Shown here in pieces: positions 436 through 6,400 of a stretch of 64,000 bases of DNA; the first letter of the stretch is position 1, and the number at the start of each line of letters is the position of its first letter. The DNA is from Macrostomum lignano (Eukaryota), in assembly GCA_002269645.1 (NCBI GenBank), contig NIVC01001432.1, positions 25,714-89,713 of the forward strand, given 5' to 3'. A program made the position numbers and the translations under genes. The notes beneath the pieces were generated by a model. The model ran no database searches. It was not told the origin of the DNA and saw only the letters and a list, made by a program, of their open reading frames with translations.

Positions 436-3400
436 TTATTCCTCGAAAAAATTAAAAGCTGGAAAAGTTGCAGTGAAACGGGATAATATATCCCGTATAA
501 GAGTAAATGCCGGATTGATTGAAGCAATTAGCGCAATAAAAATAACGAATACAATAATAATGATATTATTGACTTCAGCACTGCGACTATCAGTGGAAAT
601 GCTGGTCACTGTTGGATGTACTGTATTACTTTTATTATCTAATTTCTCGTCGATGTTGTCTTCTTTTGGCGGAACTACTGTCTGGTTGTCATGGGAACCA
701 GTAGGAACCGGACGAATCGGAAACTTCACAAGCAGCGAATCAGCCTTACGAGCAGTTCGAACAAGGATGAGCACAGATTTGCCGGCTTCGTTTGTGGTCG
801 TTAAACTTAGCTGGCACTTCTGACCTGCAGCCCTGCAGAACCCGTCGGCTGGGAGGCGTCTGCAATGGGTAATCATTAGCTGCTCAATCAAGCTATTCTC
901 GGCTACTAAAAGTACTTTTAGCTACTCAAACTACTCTTAGCTACTCAAACTACTCTTAGCTACTCAAACTACTCTTAGCTACTCAAACTACTCTTAGCTA
1001 CTCAAACTACTCTTAGCTACTCAAAATACCCTTAGCTACTCAAAGGGCCTTAGCTACTCAAAGTACCCTTAGCTACTCAAGCTACTCAAGCTACCCAAGC
1101 TACCCAAGCTACCCAAGCTACTCAAGCTACCCAAGCTACCCAAGCTACTCAAGGTACTCAAGCTACCCAAGCTACCCAAGCTACTCAAGGTACTCAAGCT
1201 ACTCAAGCTACTCAAGCTACTCAAGCTACCCAAGCTACCCAAGCTACTCAAGCTACCCAAGCTACCCAAGCTACTCAAGCTACCCAAGCTACCCAAGCTA
1301 CTCAAGCTACCCAAGCCATTCAGTATATTTTATTTCATTGCACAGATTAACAAAACGAGACAGAGAACAACACATACAGTCTTGTTTCGAGTCCGACAAC
1401 AGTGATCCACTCGAATCGTAGACTTTTCCATCCTTACTGTTGAAAAAAGCATCCACCATTGCAGGAAAAGTTTCCCGGAATGATTCTTGGCAATGGGAAT
1501 GACGCAGACCCGCTGTAATTATGGGATATGGTTGCGAAATGTGATTGGCTGGTTATAAAATCGACCAAACATAAAACTATCGAACTATTTGACTTACATT
1601 CGAGTTCTTGAAAATCTTTTAGACTTTTAAATGTAGCCGGTGGCAGAAGATGAGGATTTCTAATGCTATCCGGTGCGACTGACGCGTAGCAGAATCCTTT
1701 GTTGCAGAACAGATCCTTGCTGCACTGGGCTCTGGGGCAGACAAACACCACTCTGATGGATTGCTGTGCGGCTCGGCCCTTGACTGCGATTTTGACACTA
1801 AAATGGCCGGACCATAAAAATAAGGCAGATTTATGTGTTTGTAAAACATTACTGCTTGCACACTTACTTTGTCTGAAAGGGCACCACAGCCACGGCTCCG
1901 TTGAAAAACTTTGAGCTGAAGCAGTCTGAAAGTAGAATGAGGAATTGACTGGCTATCTATCTATCTATCTATCTATCTATCTATCTATCTATCTATCTAT
2001 CTATCTATCTATCTATCTATCTATCTATCTATCTATCTATCTATCTATCTATCTATCTATCTATCTATCTATCTATCTATCTATCTATCTATCTATCTAT
2101 CTATCTATCTATCTTACCGCGCTTACCGCGCCCATTGGCTTTCCAGCTGCCTTAATCGTTTCCGGTGATCTTGTGTGCGTGCTTTCAGCGTGATTGGCTG
2201 CGGCAAGAGAGCTCGAAAGAGCTCGCTTCGCTCGCTCTTTCTCGCTATCTACTATCTATAGCCAGGACCTGCACCGGAGCGGTTACGAAAATTAGATTTC
2301 TCGGTAGTTGCACGTACTCTTTTGCACTACTTGAGTAGTCTGATTTTCGTTCGGCATGGCTGGTTCCAGCAGGTAGTTCCTCTGGATAAAAGCGCTTACC
2401 GCGCCCATTGGCTTTCCAGCTGCCTTAATCGTTTCCGGTGATCTTGTGTGCGTGCTTTCAGCGTGATTGGCTGCGGCAAGAGAGCTCGAAAGAGCTCGCT
2501 TCGCTCGCTCTTTCTCGCTATCTACTATCTATAGCCAGGACCTGCACCGGAGCGGTTACGAAAATTAGATTTCTCGTAGTTGCACGTACTCTTTTGCACT
2601 ACTTGAGTAGTCTGATTTTCGTTCGGCATGGCTGGTTCCAGCAGGTAGTTCCTCTGGATAAAAGCGCTTACCGCGCCCATTGGCTTTCCAGCTGCCTTAA
2701 TCGTTTCCGGTGATCTTGTGTGCGTGCTTTCAGCGTGATTGGCTGCGGCAAGAGAGCTCGAAAGAGCTCGCTTCGCTCGCTCTTTCTCGCTATCTACTAT
2801 CTATAGCCAGGACCTGCACCGGAGCGGTTACGAAAATTAGATTTCTCGGTAGTTGCACGTACTCTTTTGCACTACTTGAGTAGTCTGATTTTCGTTCGGC
2901 ATGGCTGGTTGTTGTTGTTAAACGGGGTGGGAAGCTACGGGGCTACCCGCGGATCAGCCCTGGGAGGGCTCTGCCGCAGAGGGCACTACCAAGGGCACAG
3001 ATACGACTGTGAACCCGAGATACCCAAACCAATTTAGTTGGGCCCAGCGTTAGAGCTAGGGAAAGGGCGAGGGACCTCAAGTCTATGGTACAAGACACCG
3101 CCAAACCAACAGTGGAATCAGGGACGGTGCTAGGACCGAGTCCACCCAGGCCACCCCCCAGCAGACAGGTCCTCGGGAGTGCGCGAAAAAACAGAAAATG
3201 GAATTACTGAAAAGCCGTCCAAGAGCGGGGAAACCCAGAAGTCTTGGAAAAGGGCTAACTATTGGAGAGAGTCTGGGCAGCTATTTACCAAGAGCGATCC
3301 TATGCAGTCCTATGCACCGGCCAACTGTAGGTCTCGAGCCTCAAGGCTTTTCACTACCCAGCTCTATTTTGGAGTGAGTCTGGAAGGCTTGTATCCGAGG

Positions 3401-6400
3401 GGAGACTCCAGGCGTCCAGGTCCACCTCTATTGCTACCAACCCAAGGGCATCGCCTATCCAGCTCATCATTGGGGCCAGGCCAAGGGGTCGGGAGAAGAG
3501 GCACCCAGGGCAAGAGGACTCCGGACTCAGCCGGTTGTCCCCGGTTCGGGACGAACATCCTTCCCAGGACACCAATCCACTGTCAGGATGAGAGCCAGAG
3601 ACACGCAAGCAGGGACCTTACAGCAGGAGCCAGGAGATGGACCGAGGACAGGGCAAGATGGACCGGGCAAGGGCAGAGCTCATAACTCCAAGAATTGGAA
3701 GGCTTCTGTTGGCCAGATAAAAGATTAAAAGAATAAAAAGCCACAAAGGCACAAAGCTAGGGATAAAACAGCGCTGGGATGCCAGCCCAGAAAAAAAGAA
3801 TGGCAGTGGGAGAGCACCATAGCCCTAGCCCTAAAGCAGGCAGCTTGCCGACCTGCAGCCCGGGTGCTCAGCCTCAGGGCTGGCATGCTACTGGGTCTAC
3901 CGTACAACTTTGTGAATTGGTCGTTCTTTCCTGCAGGGCGGGTACGACCGGGGGCTCAGTCCCGTCCTAGCCACACTGCAGTCCAGAGAACCTACTCACT
4001 CCGGGCACCACCCCCCCTAAACCAAGGCCGAGGGCCGAAATTAGAAAAAGAATAGGGTTTATTTTTAGAACAGGCACAGCCCCTCCGGGGCGGACCCTTT
4101 GAAATTGGCATAGCCAATCGGATTGCGCACAACCCTTAGACAAGCTACCAGAGAGGCAACCAGGGTAAAAACAGTCAGAGACCGTCTTTACCAGGTAGTT
4201 CCTCTGGATAAAAGCGCTTACCGCGCCCATTGGCTTTCCAGCTGCCTTAATCGTTTCCGGTGATCTTGTGTGCGTGCTTTCAGCGTGATTGGCTGCGGCA
4301 AGAGAGCTCGAAAGAGCTCGCTTCGCTCGCTCTTTCTCGCTATCTACTATCTATAGCCAGGACCTGCACCGGAGCGGTTACGAAAATTAGATTTCTCGGT
4401 AGTTGCACGTACTCTTTTGCACTACTTGAGTAGTCTGATTTTCGTTCGGCATGGCTGGTTCCAGCAGGTAGTTCCTCTGGATAAAAGCGCTTACGCGCCC
4501 ATTGGCTTTCCAGCTGCCTTAATCGTTTCCGGTGATCTTGTGTGCGTGCTTTCAGCGTGATTGGCTGCGGCAAGAGAGCTCGAAAGAGCTCGCTTCGCTC
4601 GCTCTTTCTCGCTATCTACTATCTATAGCCAGGACCTGCACCGGAGCGGTTACGAAAATTAGATTTCTCGGTAGTTGCACGTACTCTTTTGCACTACTTG
4701 AGTAGTCTGATTTTCGTTCGGCATGGCTGGTTCCAGCAGGTAGTTCCTCTGGATAAAAGCGCTTACCGCGCCCATTGGCTTTCCAGCTGCCTTAATCGTT
4801 TCCGGTGATCTTGTGTGCGTGCTTTCAGCGTGATTGGCTGCGGCAAGAGAGCTCGAAAGAGCTCGCTTCGCTCGCTCTTTCTCGCTATCTACTATCTATC
4901 TATCTATCATCTATCTATCTATCTATCTATCTATCTATCTATCTATCTATCTATCTATCTATCTATCTATCTATCTATCTATCTATCTATCTATCTATCT
5001 ATCTATCTATCTATCCATCTATCTATCTATCTATCTATCTATCTATCTATCTATCTATCTATCTCCCTATCTATCAAGCCTACCTTGGCCCTCGGGTGTT
5101 TCGCACGTCCAATCGCTGATGTTTGCACTGCCAGGAAAGATGGCAAGAAAACGATCAGACGCATTGGCAGAAAGCTGTTTAAATTTCCACTCGCAGTTCC
5201 GATTCATTGGTGAGTCTTTCTCTCCCCTGACATAGGCCGGTAGGTACTTCTCGCGAGCCACAAACGGCATCATCCATACTGATCGCAACTGTTGAGTCAT
5301 CAACGCAGTGGTGGATTTTCTCACTGTCATCCAATTCCACGGCTAAGCAGAAGCTGTGGCAGAAAAAATGAAAAAACTCTCTTATGTTAAAAATAGATTC
5401 ATGAAAATTGATGAAGAATACTATTATCTACTGCTAATATCTACTAATAATGTCTACTAATGATGTCTACTAATAATGTCTATTATTGATGTCTACTAAT
5501 AATGTCTATTATTGATGTCTACTAATGATGTCTACTAATGATGTCTACTAATGATGTCTACTAATGATGTCTACTAATAATGTCTATTATTGATGTCTAC
5601 TAATGATGTCTACTAATAATGTCTACTAATGATGTCTACTAATGATGTCTACTAATAATGTCTATTATTGATGTCTATTATTGATGTCTACTAATGATGT
5701 CTACTAATGATGTCTACTAATGATGTCTACTAATAATGTCTATTATTGATGTCTACTAATGATGTCTACTAATGATGTCTACTAATAATGTCTATTATTG
5801 ATGTCTATTATTGATGTCTACTAATGATATCTACTAATAATGTCTATTATTGATGTCTATTATTGATGTCTACTAATGATGTCTACTAATGATGTCTACT
5901 AATGATGTCTACTAATGATATCTACTAATGATGTCTACTAATGATGTCTACTAATGATGTCTACTAAGGATATCTACTAATGGCTACTAATGATGTCTAC
6001 TAATGATGTCTACTAATGGCTACTAATAATGTCTACTAATGATATCTACTAATGATATCTACTAATGATGTCTACTAATGATGTCTACTAATGATATCTA
6101 CTAATGATGTCTACTAATGATGTCTACTAATGATGTCTACTAAGGAAATCTACTAATGATATCTACTAATGATGTCTACTAATGATGTCTACTAATGATG
6201 TCTACTAATGATGTCTACTAATGATATCTACTAAGGGGATCTACTAATGATGTCTACTAAAATATTTATAATGATGTCTACTAAGGGCATCTACTAATGA
6301 TGTCTACTAAGGGCATCTACTAAGGATATCTAATAAGGATATCTACTAATGATGGCTACTAATGATGTCTACTAAGGGCATCTACTAGAGATATCTAATA

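Follow-up and report, generated by a model that had tools for sequence, protein, structure and literature searches.

A non-coding retroposon copy that begins with a spliced-leader match in a satellite repeat of Macrostomum lignano

Introduction

Several non-LTR retrotransposons are linked to the 5′ part of the spliced-leader (SL) exon. SLACS, CZAR and CRE1/2 of trypanosomatids and NeSL-1 of nematodes are 6–7 kb long, encode a reverse transcriptase (RT) together with a restriction-like endonuclease, and reside inside SL exons; their transcripts can begin at the SL gene start site. Non-autonomous retroposons owe their transcription to heads derived from small RNAs (tRNA, 7SL, 5S and U1/U2), and in SINEU and U6-L1 retrocopies an snRNA-derived 5′ module is moved by LINE machinery. 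Stringent LINE/SINE pairs have a 3′ stem-loop and a microsatellite tail in common and prime by microhomology at the nicked target, and in some R2 elements the 5′ ribozyme pairs with upstream 28S rRNA sequence. To our knowledge, no retroposon head derived from SL RNA has been described.

SL-gene-specific non-LTR families are listed in PMC4640811. In parasitic flatworms, trans-spliced transposon RNAs have been invoked to explain loci with partial leaders beside LINE or LTR elements (Calvelo et al. 2025, PMC12582326). Here we describe an unusual non-coding retroposon copy of the flatworm Macrostomum lignano, in which the start of the SL forms part of a hairpin.

Results

The window analysed here is a 64-kb stretch of M. 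lignano DNA in which the insert breaks up a satellite. According to TRF, the target is a single 272-bp tandem repeat in two blocks (2119–2910 and 4192–4899) of about 99% identity. Upon alignment of the repeat units, four intact junctions showed the empty site to be GGCATGGCTGGTT-CCAGC-AGGTAGTTCC, and the filled site reads GGCATGGCTGGTT / GTTGTTGTTAAACGG...CGTCTTTAC(C) / AGGTAGTTCC, with slashes at the junctions. This comparison bears out the initial annotation, which had an insert interrupting the target at 2911–4192, and delimits a 1281-nt non-coding retrocopy at 2911–4191 with the minus strand as sense. The C at 4192 may be a target base or a 1282nd base of the insert. The left block of the target extends over 2119–2910 and the right block, which restarts 4–5 nt past the left break, over 4193–4899 (no strand assigned to either), with CCAG or CCAGC (4–5 nt) deleted at the insertion site. 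Rfam matched nothing in the 272-bp repeat, whether with the gathering threshold or with E relaxed to 10, and an SL covariance model revealed no SL RNA gene within the window. Because the same locus with an identical insert, head, tail and junctions is present on NIVC01000363.1 of a public assembly (GCA_002269645.1, Mlig_3_7), an assembly artefact is excluded. Identities of 52% (amino acid) and about 70% (nucleotide) had suggested a host other than M. lignano, a reading withdrawn upon a 100% pol match and a 99% match of the locus.

At the 3′ end, the last three bases of the left flank (GTT, 2908–2910) belong to the target and are the complement of the AAC unit with which the insert RNA ends. 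From the sequence and the unit alignment, this tail is (AAC)3 at 2911–2919 on the minus strand, so that on the plus strand the target GTT and the tail together form four GTT repeats; the string AACAACAAC has no other occurrence within the window. The tail is not poly(A), and AATAAA is absent near the insert 3′ end. Directly upstream of the tail lies a structured region (2920–3040, minus strand), in which the strongest hairpin is GCGGCAGAGCCCUCCCAGGGCUGAUCCGC (2949–2977, –15.7 kcal/mol). The last 130 nt of the insert fold with z = –2.05, and the whole insert with z = –1.8 on the sense strand versus +0.7 on the antisense strand. We infer that 2920–3040 is a candidate recognition site for the mobilising RT. 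The tail, the GTT/AAC microhomology and the 4–5 nt deletion indicate target-primed reverse transcription (TPRT) with the minus strand as sense, and the insertion is precise with respect to the empty site and accompanied by a 3′ tail and a target alteration, as in non-LTR (TPRT) retrocopies. Retroposon-type junctions, as initially annotated, were confirmed by comparing the four empty sites with the filled one, and the 3′ anatomy proposed along with them (structure, (AAC)n tail, 3-nt microhomology and small deletion) could be seen in full at the junctions or in the folds.

As in non-autonomous retroposons, the insert has no coding capacity of its own. Its longest sense-strand open reading frame (ORF) spans 87 aa, none of its six frames matched Pfam, and no homologues were found for a 168-aa antisense ORF. 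With the two Rfam cut-offs applied to the repeat, nothing was found in the insert either, neither a ribozyme nor an snRNA or SL family. Runs of TTTTT terminate RNA polymerase III, and since such a run is present at nt 22–26 of the sense RNA, the insert RNA would not be a Pol III transcript. No A or B box, as in the internal Pol III promoter of a SINE in the strict sense, was seen by eye in the first 130 nt, the TTTTT run makes the sequence incompatible with Pol III, and 1.28 kb is large for a SINE-like element.

The minus-strand 5′ start of the insert reads (G)GTAAAGACGG, the bracketed G being position 4192. Within this start, GTAAAGACGGTCTCTgACTG (4191–4172, minus strand) corresponds to nt 3–22 of the 44-nt Macrostomum leader, and alignment to the published sequence (CCGTAAAGACGGTCTCTTACTGCGAAGACTCAATTTATTGCATG) upheld the annotated identity of 19/20 at the exact 5′ end; the sole mismatch is a T-to-G difference at 4176. 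The leader sequence of the initial annotation proved correct by the literature and by two genomic SL RNA genes (L001 and L004), which come from samples other than M. lignano and also matched the head. M. lignano itself has eight SL RNA loci in the deduplicated Mlig_3_7 assembly (PMC8629364). The match is located exactly at the insert boundary and 2–3 nt from the SL RNA 5′ end, which fits an RNA starting at an SL-type start site. Allowing up to 3 mismatches, the head occurred once in the window and in 0 of 100 shuffles, so a chance match in the window is not expected.

The SL identity ends at SL nt 22. Global alignment with SL RNA was poor beyond nt 21, and SL nt 23–44 and the remaining SL RNA had no counterpart in the insert 5′ region. 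Covariance model R1 scored L001 and L004 at 137 bits and gave no hit to the head even with filters off. By this model and the alignment, we rejected the first 110 nt of the insert as a diverged SL RNA copy. An SL RNA gene or pseudogene would show the complete exon, a GTAAG donor, stem I, an Sm-like site and 3′ hairpins, and this set was not found here. Despite the rejected homology, the 5′ 110 nt loosely echo the architecture of SL RNA.

The first 29 bases of the insert RNA (4164–4192, minus strand) form a hairpin, GGUAAAGACGGUC-UCU-GACUGUUUUUACC. The two strand-specific G-U pairs that had been annotated in it are present, with –15.4 kcal/mol (z = –5.9) on the minus strand versus –7.6 on the plus strand, but the stem measures 13 bp rather than the 12 bp given initially. 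About 1 in 1000 29-nt windows of the sequence reach equal folding stability. The SL alone folds with only –5.6 kcal/mol, and reverting the two non-SL bases to SL lowers the hairpin to –10.5. For the lower 8 bp of the stem, partner bases come from the non-SL body, in which UUUUUACC pairs with GGUAAAGA (chance about 5e-4 at the base composition of the insert), and the T-to-G difference from the SL adds one further closed pair. Because of this body-supplied pairing and the added pair, the hairpin is no by-product of the SL sequence, and the pattern suggests that the 5′ module has evolved as such and did not arise by random fusion. If the first G of the hairpin (4192) were target-derived, one of the two pair-adding differences would be lost. 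A snap-back origin of the hairpin was rejected, as it would need the 3′ arm to serve as template for the 5′ arm, which would afterwards have to acquire two mutations towards exact SL identity.

No second copy of the insert was found in the 64-kb window or in a 21 kb paralogous region of M. lignano (L002). Sampling of the host via annotated proteins retrieved only this paralogous locus and the insert's own locus (L006); the latter is the same locus in another assembly, so a single insertion event is still represented. When the head pattern GTAAAGACGGTCTCTKACTG was searched in metagenome, viral and prokaryote-genome contigs, it retrieved the two true SL RNA genes (L001 and L004) and two chance bacterial matches (L003 and L005), and no G-variant head in a flatworm context was found among these contigs. 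The 3′-end 22-mer of the insert was not present in viral contigs, nor did the head string match the literature text searched. A Pfam scan of the 67 open frames of the window revealed just Ty3/gypsy pol, an ASC channel and a GPCR. No LINE RT that could be a partner with the same 3′ end as the insert is among these.

Discussion

We favour the explanation, to which we give about an even chance, that the insert represents a non-autonomous retroposon, mobilised by a LINE, whose head derives or is transcribed from the beginning of an SL RNA gene. The anatomy of the junctions, the SL identity and the hairpin are observed directly; the existence of a family, that of a partner LINE and the role of the head are inferred. 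A non-coding RNA of ~1.28 kb would have been copied full-length or nearly so, and a non-LTR (LINE-type) RT would have inserted the copy into the satellite by TPRT. The plus strand would have been nicked after GGTT, allowing the GTT 3′ end to anneal to the (AAC)n tail of the RNA and prime the cDNA, and joining of the 5′ end would have deleted 4–5 nt of the target. The partner LINE enzyme may recognise the 3′ stem-loops together with the microsatellite tail. The 5′ module would consist of SL nt 3–22 plus 8 nt of element sequence, remodelled to the 13-bp terminal hairpin. Its likeliest origin would be a master copy located within an SL RNA gene, or one with a captured SL 5′ end, whose RNA polymerase II transcripts would in either case begin at the SL transcription start site.

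Hannon et al. are said to have described in 1990 the 22-nt SL as an intragenic promoter element in the SL RNA genes of Ascaris. More tentatively, the head might be a portable 29-nt 5′ module from SL genes, in either of two versions. The first ~20 nt of the leader could work as a promoter within the gene or specify the cap, by which each new copy would bring its own start signal. Alternatively, the module could stem from an undescribed flatworm lineage residing in SL RNA genes, in which SL target sequence is paired with the element 5′ end.

An off-target copy of an element that, like SLACS, CZAR or NeSL, normally resides in SL RNA genes appears unlikely to us. Such an element would have inserted after about nt 22 of the SL exon, co-transcription from the SL promoter would make its RNA start with the SL 5′ part, and pairing of this target part with the element start would have been selected, as in some R2 5′ ribozymes and upstream 28S. 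The match indeed comprises the 5′ part of the exon only and begins beside the SL 5′ end, the SL part finds its complement in bases of the element itself, and NeSL-clade R5/LIN elements with varied target specificities occur in flatworms (PMC4640811). However, the copy resides in a satellite and not in an SL gene, encodes neither RT nor endonuclease, and has a target that by eye bears no convincing similarity to SL nt 15–30; the L001 and L004 SL RNA genes are moreover uninterrupted, though they are not from M. lignano. Beside the two readings of the initial annotation, both of which are compatible with the data, a template-switch chimera constitutes a third, and we consider such a one-off event doubtful. 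Here an RT, having copied an unrelated RNA beginning ACUGUUUUUACC up to its capped 5′ end, would have switched to SL RNA at a common ACUG and continued to the 5′ end of that RNA, in the way of U6-L1 chimeric pseudogenes. SL RNA is abundant, ACUG is common to the SL and non-SL parts at the junction, and the adjoining T-to-G mismatch is a place for a cap-templated extra base. The start 2–3 nt from the SL 5′ end and the ACUG at the junction are found together with an SL part of 20 nt only and a body complementary to it, whereas the snRNA part of known chimeras usually reaches the snRNA 3′ end, and a random fusion would not provide 8 more SL-complementary bases (about 5e-4).

That the insert is a retrocopied mRNA or transposon transcript with a trans-spliced SL is disfavoured and, judging from the bases present, close to refuted, making it very improbable. 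Precedents are found in 597 partial-SL loci of 24 species (PMC12582326) and in dinoflagellate retrogenes with SL relics. Nevertheless, the body should then follow the SL exon 3′ end, and 5′ truncation would drop the SL 5′ part; the insert instead has the 5′ 20 nt of the SL, lacks the 3′ 22 nt (CGAAGACTCAATTTATTGCATG) and the acceptor-site join to the exon end ...TTATTGCATG, and carries (AAC)3 in place of poly(A). This reading would be viable only with a minor SL RNA gene whose exon reads GGTAAAGACGGTCTCTGACTGTTTTTACC...; a cryptic splice donor within the SL was rejected, there being no GT at nt 22/23. We consider as rejected, with hardly any probability left, that the SL similarity is due to chance or the insert to assembly. 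Twenty-mers do recur in huge databases, as the two bacterial matches (L003 and L005) in 596 Gb illustrate, but the shuffles of the 64-kb window, the position of the match at the exact insert boundary and the presence of the same insert in GCA_002269645.1 (NIVC01000363.1) argue against either.

If the SL head is genuine, it would add a new source to the small-RNA-derived heads, and if either version of the module holds, a retroposon family with a head of spliced-leader RNA origin would be on record for the first time. Transposon biology would then be tied to trans-splicing in a regeneration model that is amenable to transgenesis, and the "partial SL next to LINE/LTR" loci of parasitic flatworms would gain an alternative reading. 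Should the element live in SL gene arrays, the SLACS/NeSL lifestyle would reach the Platyhelminthes; as a one-off chimera, the insert would be a curiosity.

Compared with SLACS, CZAR, CRE and NeSL, the M. lignano copy is likewise a non-LTR product linked to the 5′ part of the SL exon, yet it is a non-coding 1.28 kb in a satellite, with neither the fixed site inside the SL exon nor the RT and restriction-like endonuclease of those elements. With R2, where target-derived sequence at the RNA 5′ end pairs with the first bases of the element, the hairpin may have a functional analogy, although Rfam detected no ribozyme in the insert, and neither the target gene nor the class of element is the same. 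The stringent LINE/SINE pair UnaL2/UnaSINE1 of eel likewise combines a structured 3′ end with a short tandem-repeat tail; unlike in that pairing, the AAC unit was not matched to any described flatworm LINE. SINEU (with U1/U2 snRNA heads) and U6-L1 retrocopies are similar in their 5′ module from an abundant small nuclear RNA and in their LINE mobilisation, but their head comprises much of the snRNA, whereas that of M. lignano is 20 nt long and known from one copy. Finally, the SL-tagged retrocopies of dinoflagellates and of the flatworm loci in PMC12582326, the latter from the same phylum as M. lignano, are also retroelement-linked SL fragments and not SL RNA genes; in contrast to these, the M. 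lignano insert carries the 5′ half of the SL only, embedded in a hairpin with body sequence.

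Results

The insert lies within a 272-bp tandem repeat, a single array at 2119-4899 with units ~99% identical, which it divides into 2119-2910 and 4192-4899 (TRF). Unit alignment revealed the empty site in four intact unit-to-unit junctions as GGCATGGCTGGTT-CCAGC-AGGTAGTTCC, whereas the filled site reads GGCATGGCTGGTT/GTTGTTGTTAAACGGGG ... GACCGTCTTTAC(C)/AGGTAGTTCC, placing the insert at 2911-4191 with the minus strand as sense strand. C4192 is ambiguous between insert and target, and the target deletion at insertion was CCAG or CCAGC. The target GTT (2908-2910) runs on into the (GTT)3 of the insert. 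On the minus strand, the insert begins with (G)GTAAAGACGGTCTCTGACTGTTTTTACC and ends with CCCCGTTTAACAACAAC, while AACAACAAC was found once in the window, at the insert end. This anatomy is as expected for target-primed reverse transcription, in which the plus strand of the target would have been nicked after GGTT, the GTT 3′ end would have paired with the (AAC)n end of an RNA to prime cDNA synthesis, and the 5′ end would have been joined afterwards, with a small target deletion arising. The 272-bp unit had no Rfam match and carries two CCAAT-box-like motifs (CCCATTGGC and GTGATTGGCTG); (CTAT)n microsatellites of ~160-190 bp each border the array on both sides (1953-2114 and 4885-5075).

Near the insert, a Ty3/gypsy-type pol (9031-12706, minus strand; protease, RT, RNase H and integrase in two overlapping frames) showed 100% identity to the M. 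lignano protein BOX15_Mlig028849g1, as which its RT part is annotated, on a single contig. The region fetched around this protein (L006; GCA_002269645.1, NIVC01000363.1:99956-122763) is collinear with window positions 1-12560 at ~99% identity and contains the insert too, with no difference in head, tail or junctions. Differences within the insert were nearly all homopolymer indels, next to one short rearranged patch. This identifies the host as M. lignano and the window as another assembly or haplotype of the L006 locus. The L006 insert is the same insertion event and no independent copy, and a single such event is at present the basis of the interpretation. Apart from the window, the comparison covered two M. 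lignano regions reached through annotated proteins, L006 and L002, and three further window proteins led to no other region.

The published M. lignano spliced leader (SL) is CCGTAAAGACGGTCTCTTACTGCGAAGACTCAATTTATTGCATG (Grudniewska et al. 2016, PMC5173321), and the same leader occurs in M. hystrix and, with one extra 5′ G, in M. cliftonense (Wiberg et al. 2023 supplement, PMC10468722), so the SL sequence given in the initial annotation was correct. In public contigs, a scan with GTAAAGACGGTCTCTKACTG uncovered two genuine SL RNA genes of Macrostomum type, at 616-719 of L001 (JGI metagenome contig Ga0302322_100095745) and at about 1590-1693 of L004 (JAGQZA010000190.1). The latter, a 3.7-kb contig of 2.6x coverage labelled as a Flavobacteriaceae MAG, is almost certainly flatworm contamination of that MAG. 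In both genes, the sequence tttgCCGTAAAGACGGTCTCTTACTGCGAAGACTCAATTTATTGCATG/GTAAGACACCG... leads into two hairpins separated by a U-rich Sm-like site, and their RNAs are predicted to adopt the canonical three-stem fold. The 44-nt leader is identical in the two, with differences in the loops, the spacer as well as the 3′ end of the downstream part. Against the published leader and both genes alike, 19 of the first 20 unambiguous bases of the insert (4191-4172) matched SL nt 3-22, bearing out the identity originally claimed. Even when up to 3 mismatches were allowed, this head occurred only once in the window, where chance predicts no occurrence; 20-mer matches also turned up in two bacterial contigs (L003 and L005) among 596 Gb, which is the chance background expected at that scale.

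Alignment past insert nt 21 revealed no homology to the remaining SL exon or to the intron part of the SL RNA. A covariance model built on the two SL RNA genes, both scoring 137 bits, likewise found no match in the insert 5′ region, even with filters off. The head thus amounts to 20 nt from the 5′ end of the SL and is not an SL RNA copy. Nor did the model place an SL RNA gene anywhere in L006, the paralogous M. lignano region L002 or the window. Further along, GGUAG lies at insert nt 44-48, roughly at the SL donor position, and insert nt 75-114 (4078-4118, minus strand) comprise a 6-bp hairpin with GCCAAU, then AAUUUCAAAGGG, then the GC hairpin GCCCC-GGA-GGGGC. This order loosely echoes that of SL RNA, in which an Sm-like site lies between two hairpins, which may be chance, and the covariance model gave no support for homology of this stretch to SL RNA.

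Insert bases 1-29 are predicted to fold as GGUAAAGACGGUC-UCU-GACUGUUUUUACC, confirming the reported 5′ hairpin with its two G-U pairs and its preference for the sense strand, at a length of 13 rather than 12 bp. Its stability is -15.4 kcal/mol (z = -5.9), compared with only -7.6 for the complementary strand, and comparably stable 29-nt windows occur about once in 1000 in this sequence, mostly in GC-rich stretches. The top four pairs alone come from the SL, whose first 31 nt fold to -5.6 kcal/mol, while the lower eight require UUUUUACC, which belongs to the non-SL body (chance ~5e-4 at the base composition of the insert). Moreover, the T-to-G difference at 4176, the only internal departure from the SL, adds one pair, as does the first G of the hairpin, which is possibly target-derived; with both bases restored to those of the SL, the hairpin weakened to -10.5 kcal/mol. 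A snap-back origin was rejected, as it needs a 5′ arm copied from the 3′ arm, followed by two mutations towards exact SL identity. Because of the pairing supplied by the body, the pair-adding differences and this rejection, the head gives the impression of a unit that evolved as such and not of a random fusion.

The insert has no sense-strand ORF above 87 aa, no Pfam family in six-frame translation, no homologue of its 168-aa antisense ORF, and nothing credible in Rfam, including no ribozyme. A TTTTT at nt 22-26 speaks against transcription by Pol III. Compared with shuffles, the whole-insert fold gave z = -1.8 for sense and z = +0.7 for antisense. Stringent LINE/SINE pairs carry 3′ recognition elements, which a strong hairpin at 2949-2977 (-15.7 kcal/mol), 30-60 nt from the tail, resembles. 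No LINE reverse transcriptase turned up in the window.

Over a third of the window consists of tandem repeats, whose units are many and unrelated. The 16-bp satellite CCCTGCACCATCATCT forms two arrays of opposite orientation (32498-33983, plus; 34790-35744) flanking a perfect 15-bp array (34070-34346), a large inverted satellite with strong GC-skew reversal, and the 13-bp satellite TCTACTAATGATG forms two arrays 22 kb apart (5440-6440 and 28065-30243). A 730-aa open frame (19507-21699, plus) is retrotransposon-gag-like by eye in its N-terminal part, followed by ~57 copies of a 24/48-bp repeat encoding proline/alanine/glutamine-rich repeats; of this frame, the non-repeat N-terminal part (19507-20189) was covered by the Pfam scan of the window, whose 11 hits included no gag family. 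Genes for an ASC/ENaC-type channel and a rhodopsin-type GPCR (44816-46876 and 50473-51807) occur in the same order in L002 (NIVC01000084.1), at only 66-71% nucleotide identity. The GPCR is 52% identical to its best M. lignano match, and no annotated protein in the collection corresponds to it exactly. L002 is an old segmental or whole-genome duplicate, far older than the recent polyploidy of M. lignano, which explains both the 52% and the ~70% identity. A tRNA match at 55798-55867 (minus; Rfam 33.7 bits, threshold 29) is probably a degenerate tRNA or tRNA-derived repeat, ARAGORN finding no tRNA in the window. Finally, an open frame at 57741-58241 (minus) resembles a mariner/Tc1-type transposase remnant when its translation is judged by eye, with no Pfam match at E < 0.001.

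Discussion

With the hairpin length corrected, every checkable detail of the observation in the initial annotation was confirmed, and its interpretation as a retroposon-like insert whose 5′ end matches the flatworm SL was partly supported, in its retroposon-type anatomy and 5′ SL identity. Our top-ranked reading, which we consider about evenly balanced between right and wrong, is a retroposon that is non-autonomous, mobilised by a LINE and equipped with a 5′ module derived from an SL gene. This module might have been captured, or gained through a master copy transcribed from an SL RNA gene start site. As a special case, the element could be SL-resident, with a SLACS/NeSL-like lifestyle and the insert as an off-target copy, which we regard as unlikely. 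The complementarity of the SL part to the element's own first bases recalls those R2 elements in which upstream 28S sequence pairs with the element 5′ end. NeSL-clade elements of varied target also occur in flatworms (PMC4640811). However, the insert lacks the defining features of SL-resident elements, lying outside any SL exon and having neither RT nor endonuclease.

A one-off template-switch chimera would account for the shared ACUG and for the mismatch directly adjoining it, but leaves the extra SL-body complementarity unexplained, and seems improbable. In parasitic flatworms, loci with partial leaders next to LINE and LTR elements were put down to reverse-transcribed trans-spliced transposon RNA (PMC12582326). 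The insert shows the reverse pattern, its head being the SL 5′ piece only, which argues against this explanation, and SL nt 22/23 offer no GT for a cryptic donor. We regard a trans-spliced retrocopy as close to exclusion. Closer still to exclusion is a chance match, given how rare the head is, or an assembly artefact, which the insert is not, since it is present in L006 too. Retroposons combining a small-RNA-derived head with a LINE-type tail are a known kind, and the insert, read as a LINE-mobilised retroposon with an SL-derived head, is best filed as a variant of it.
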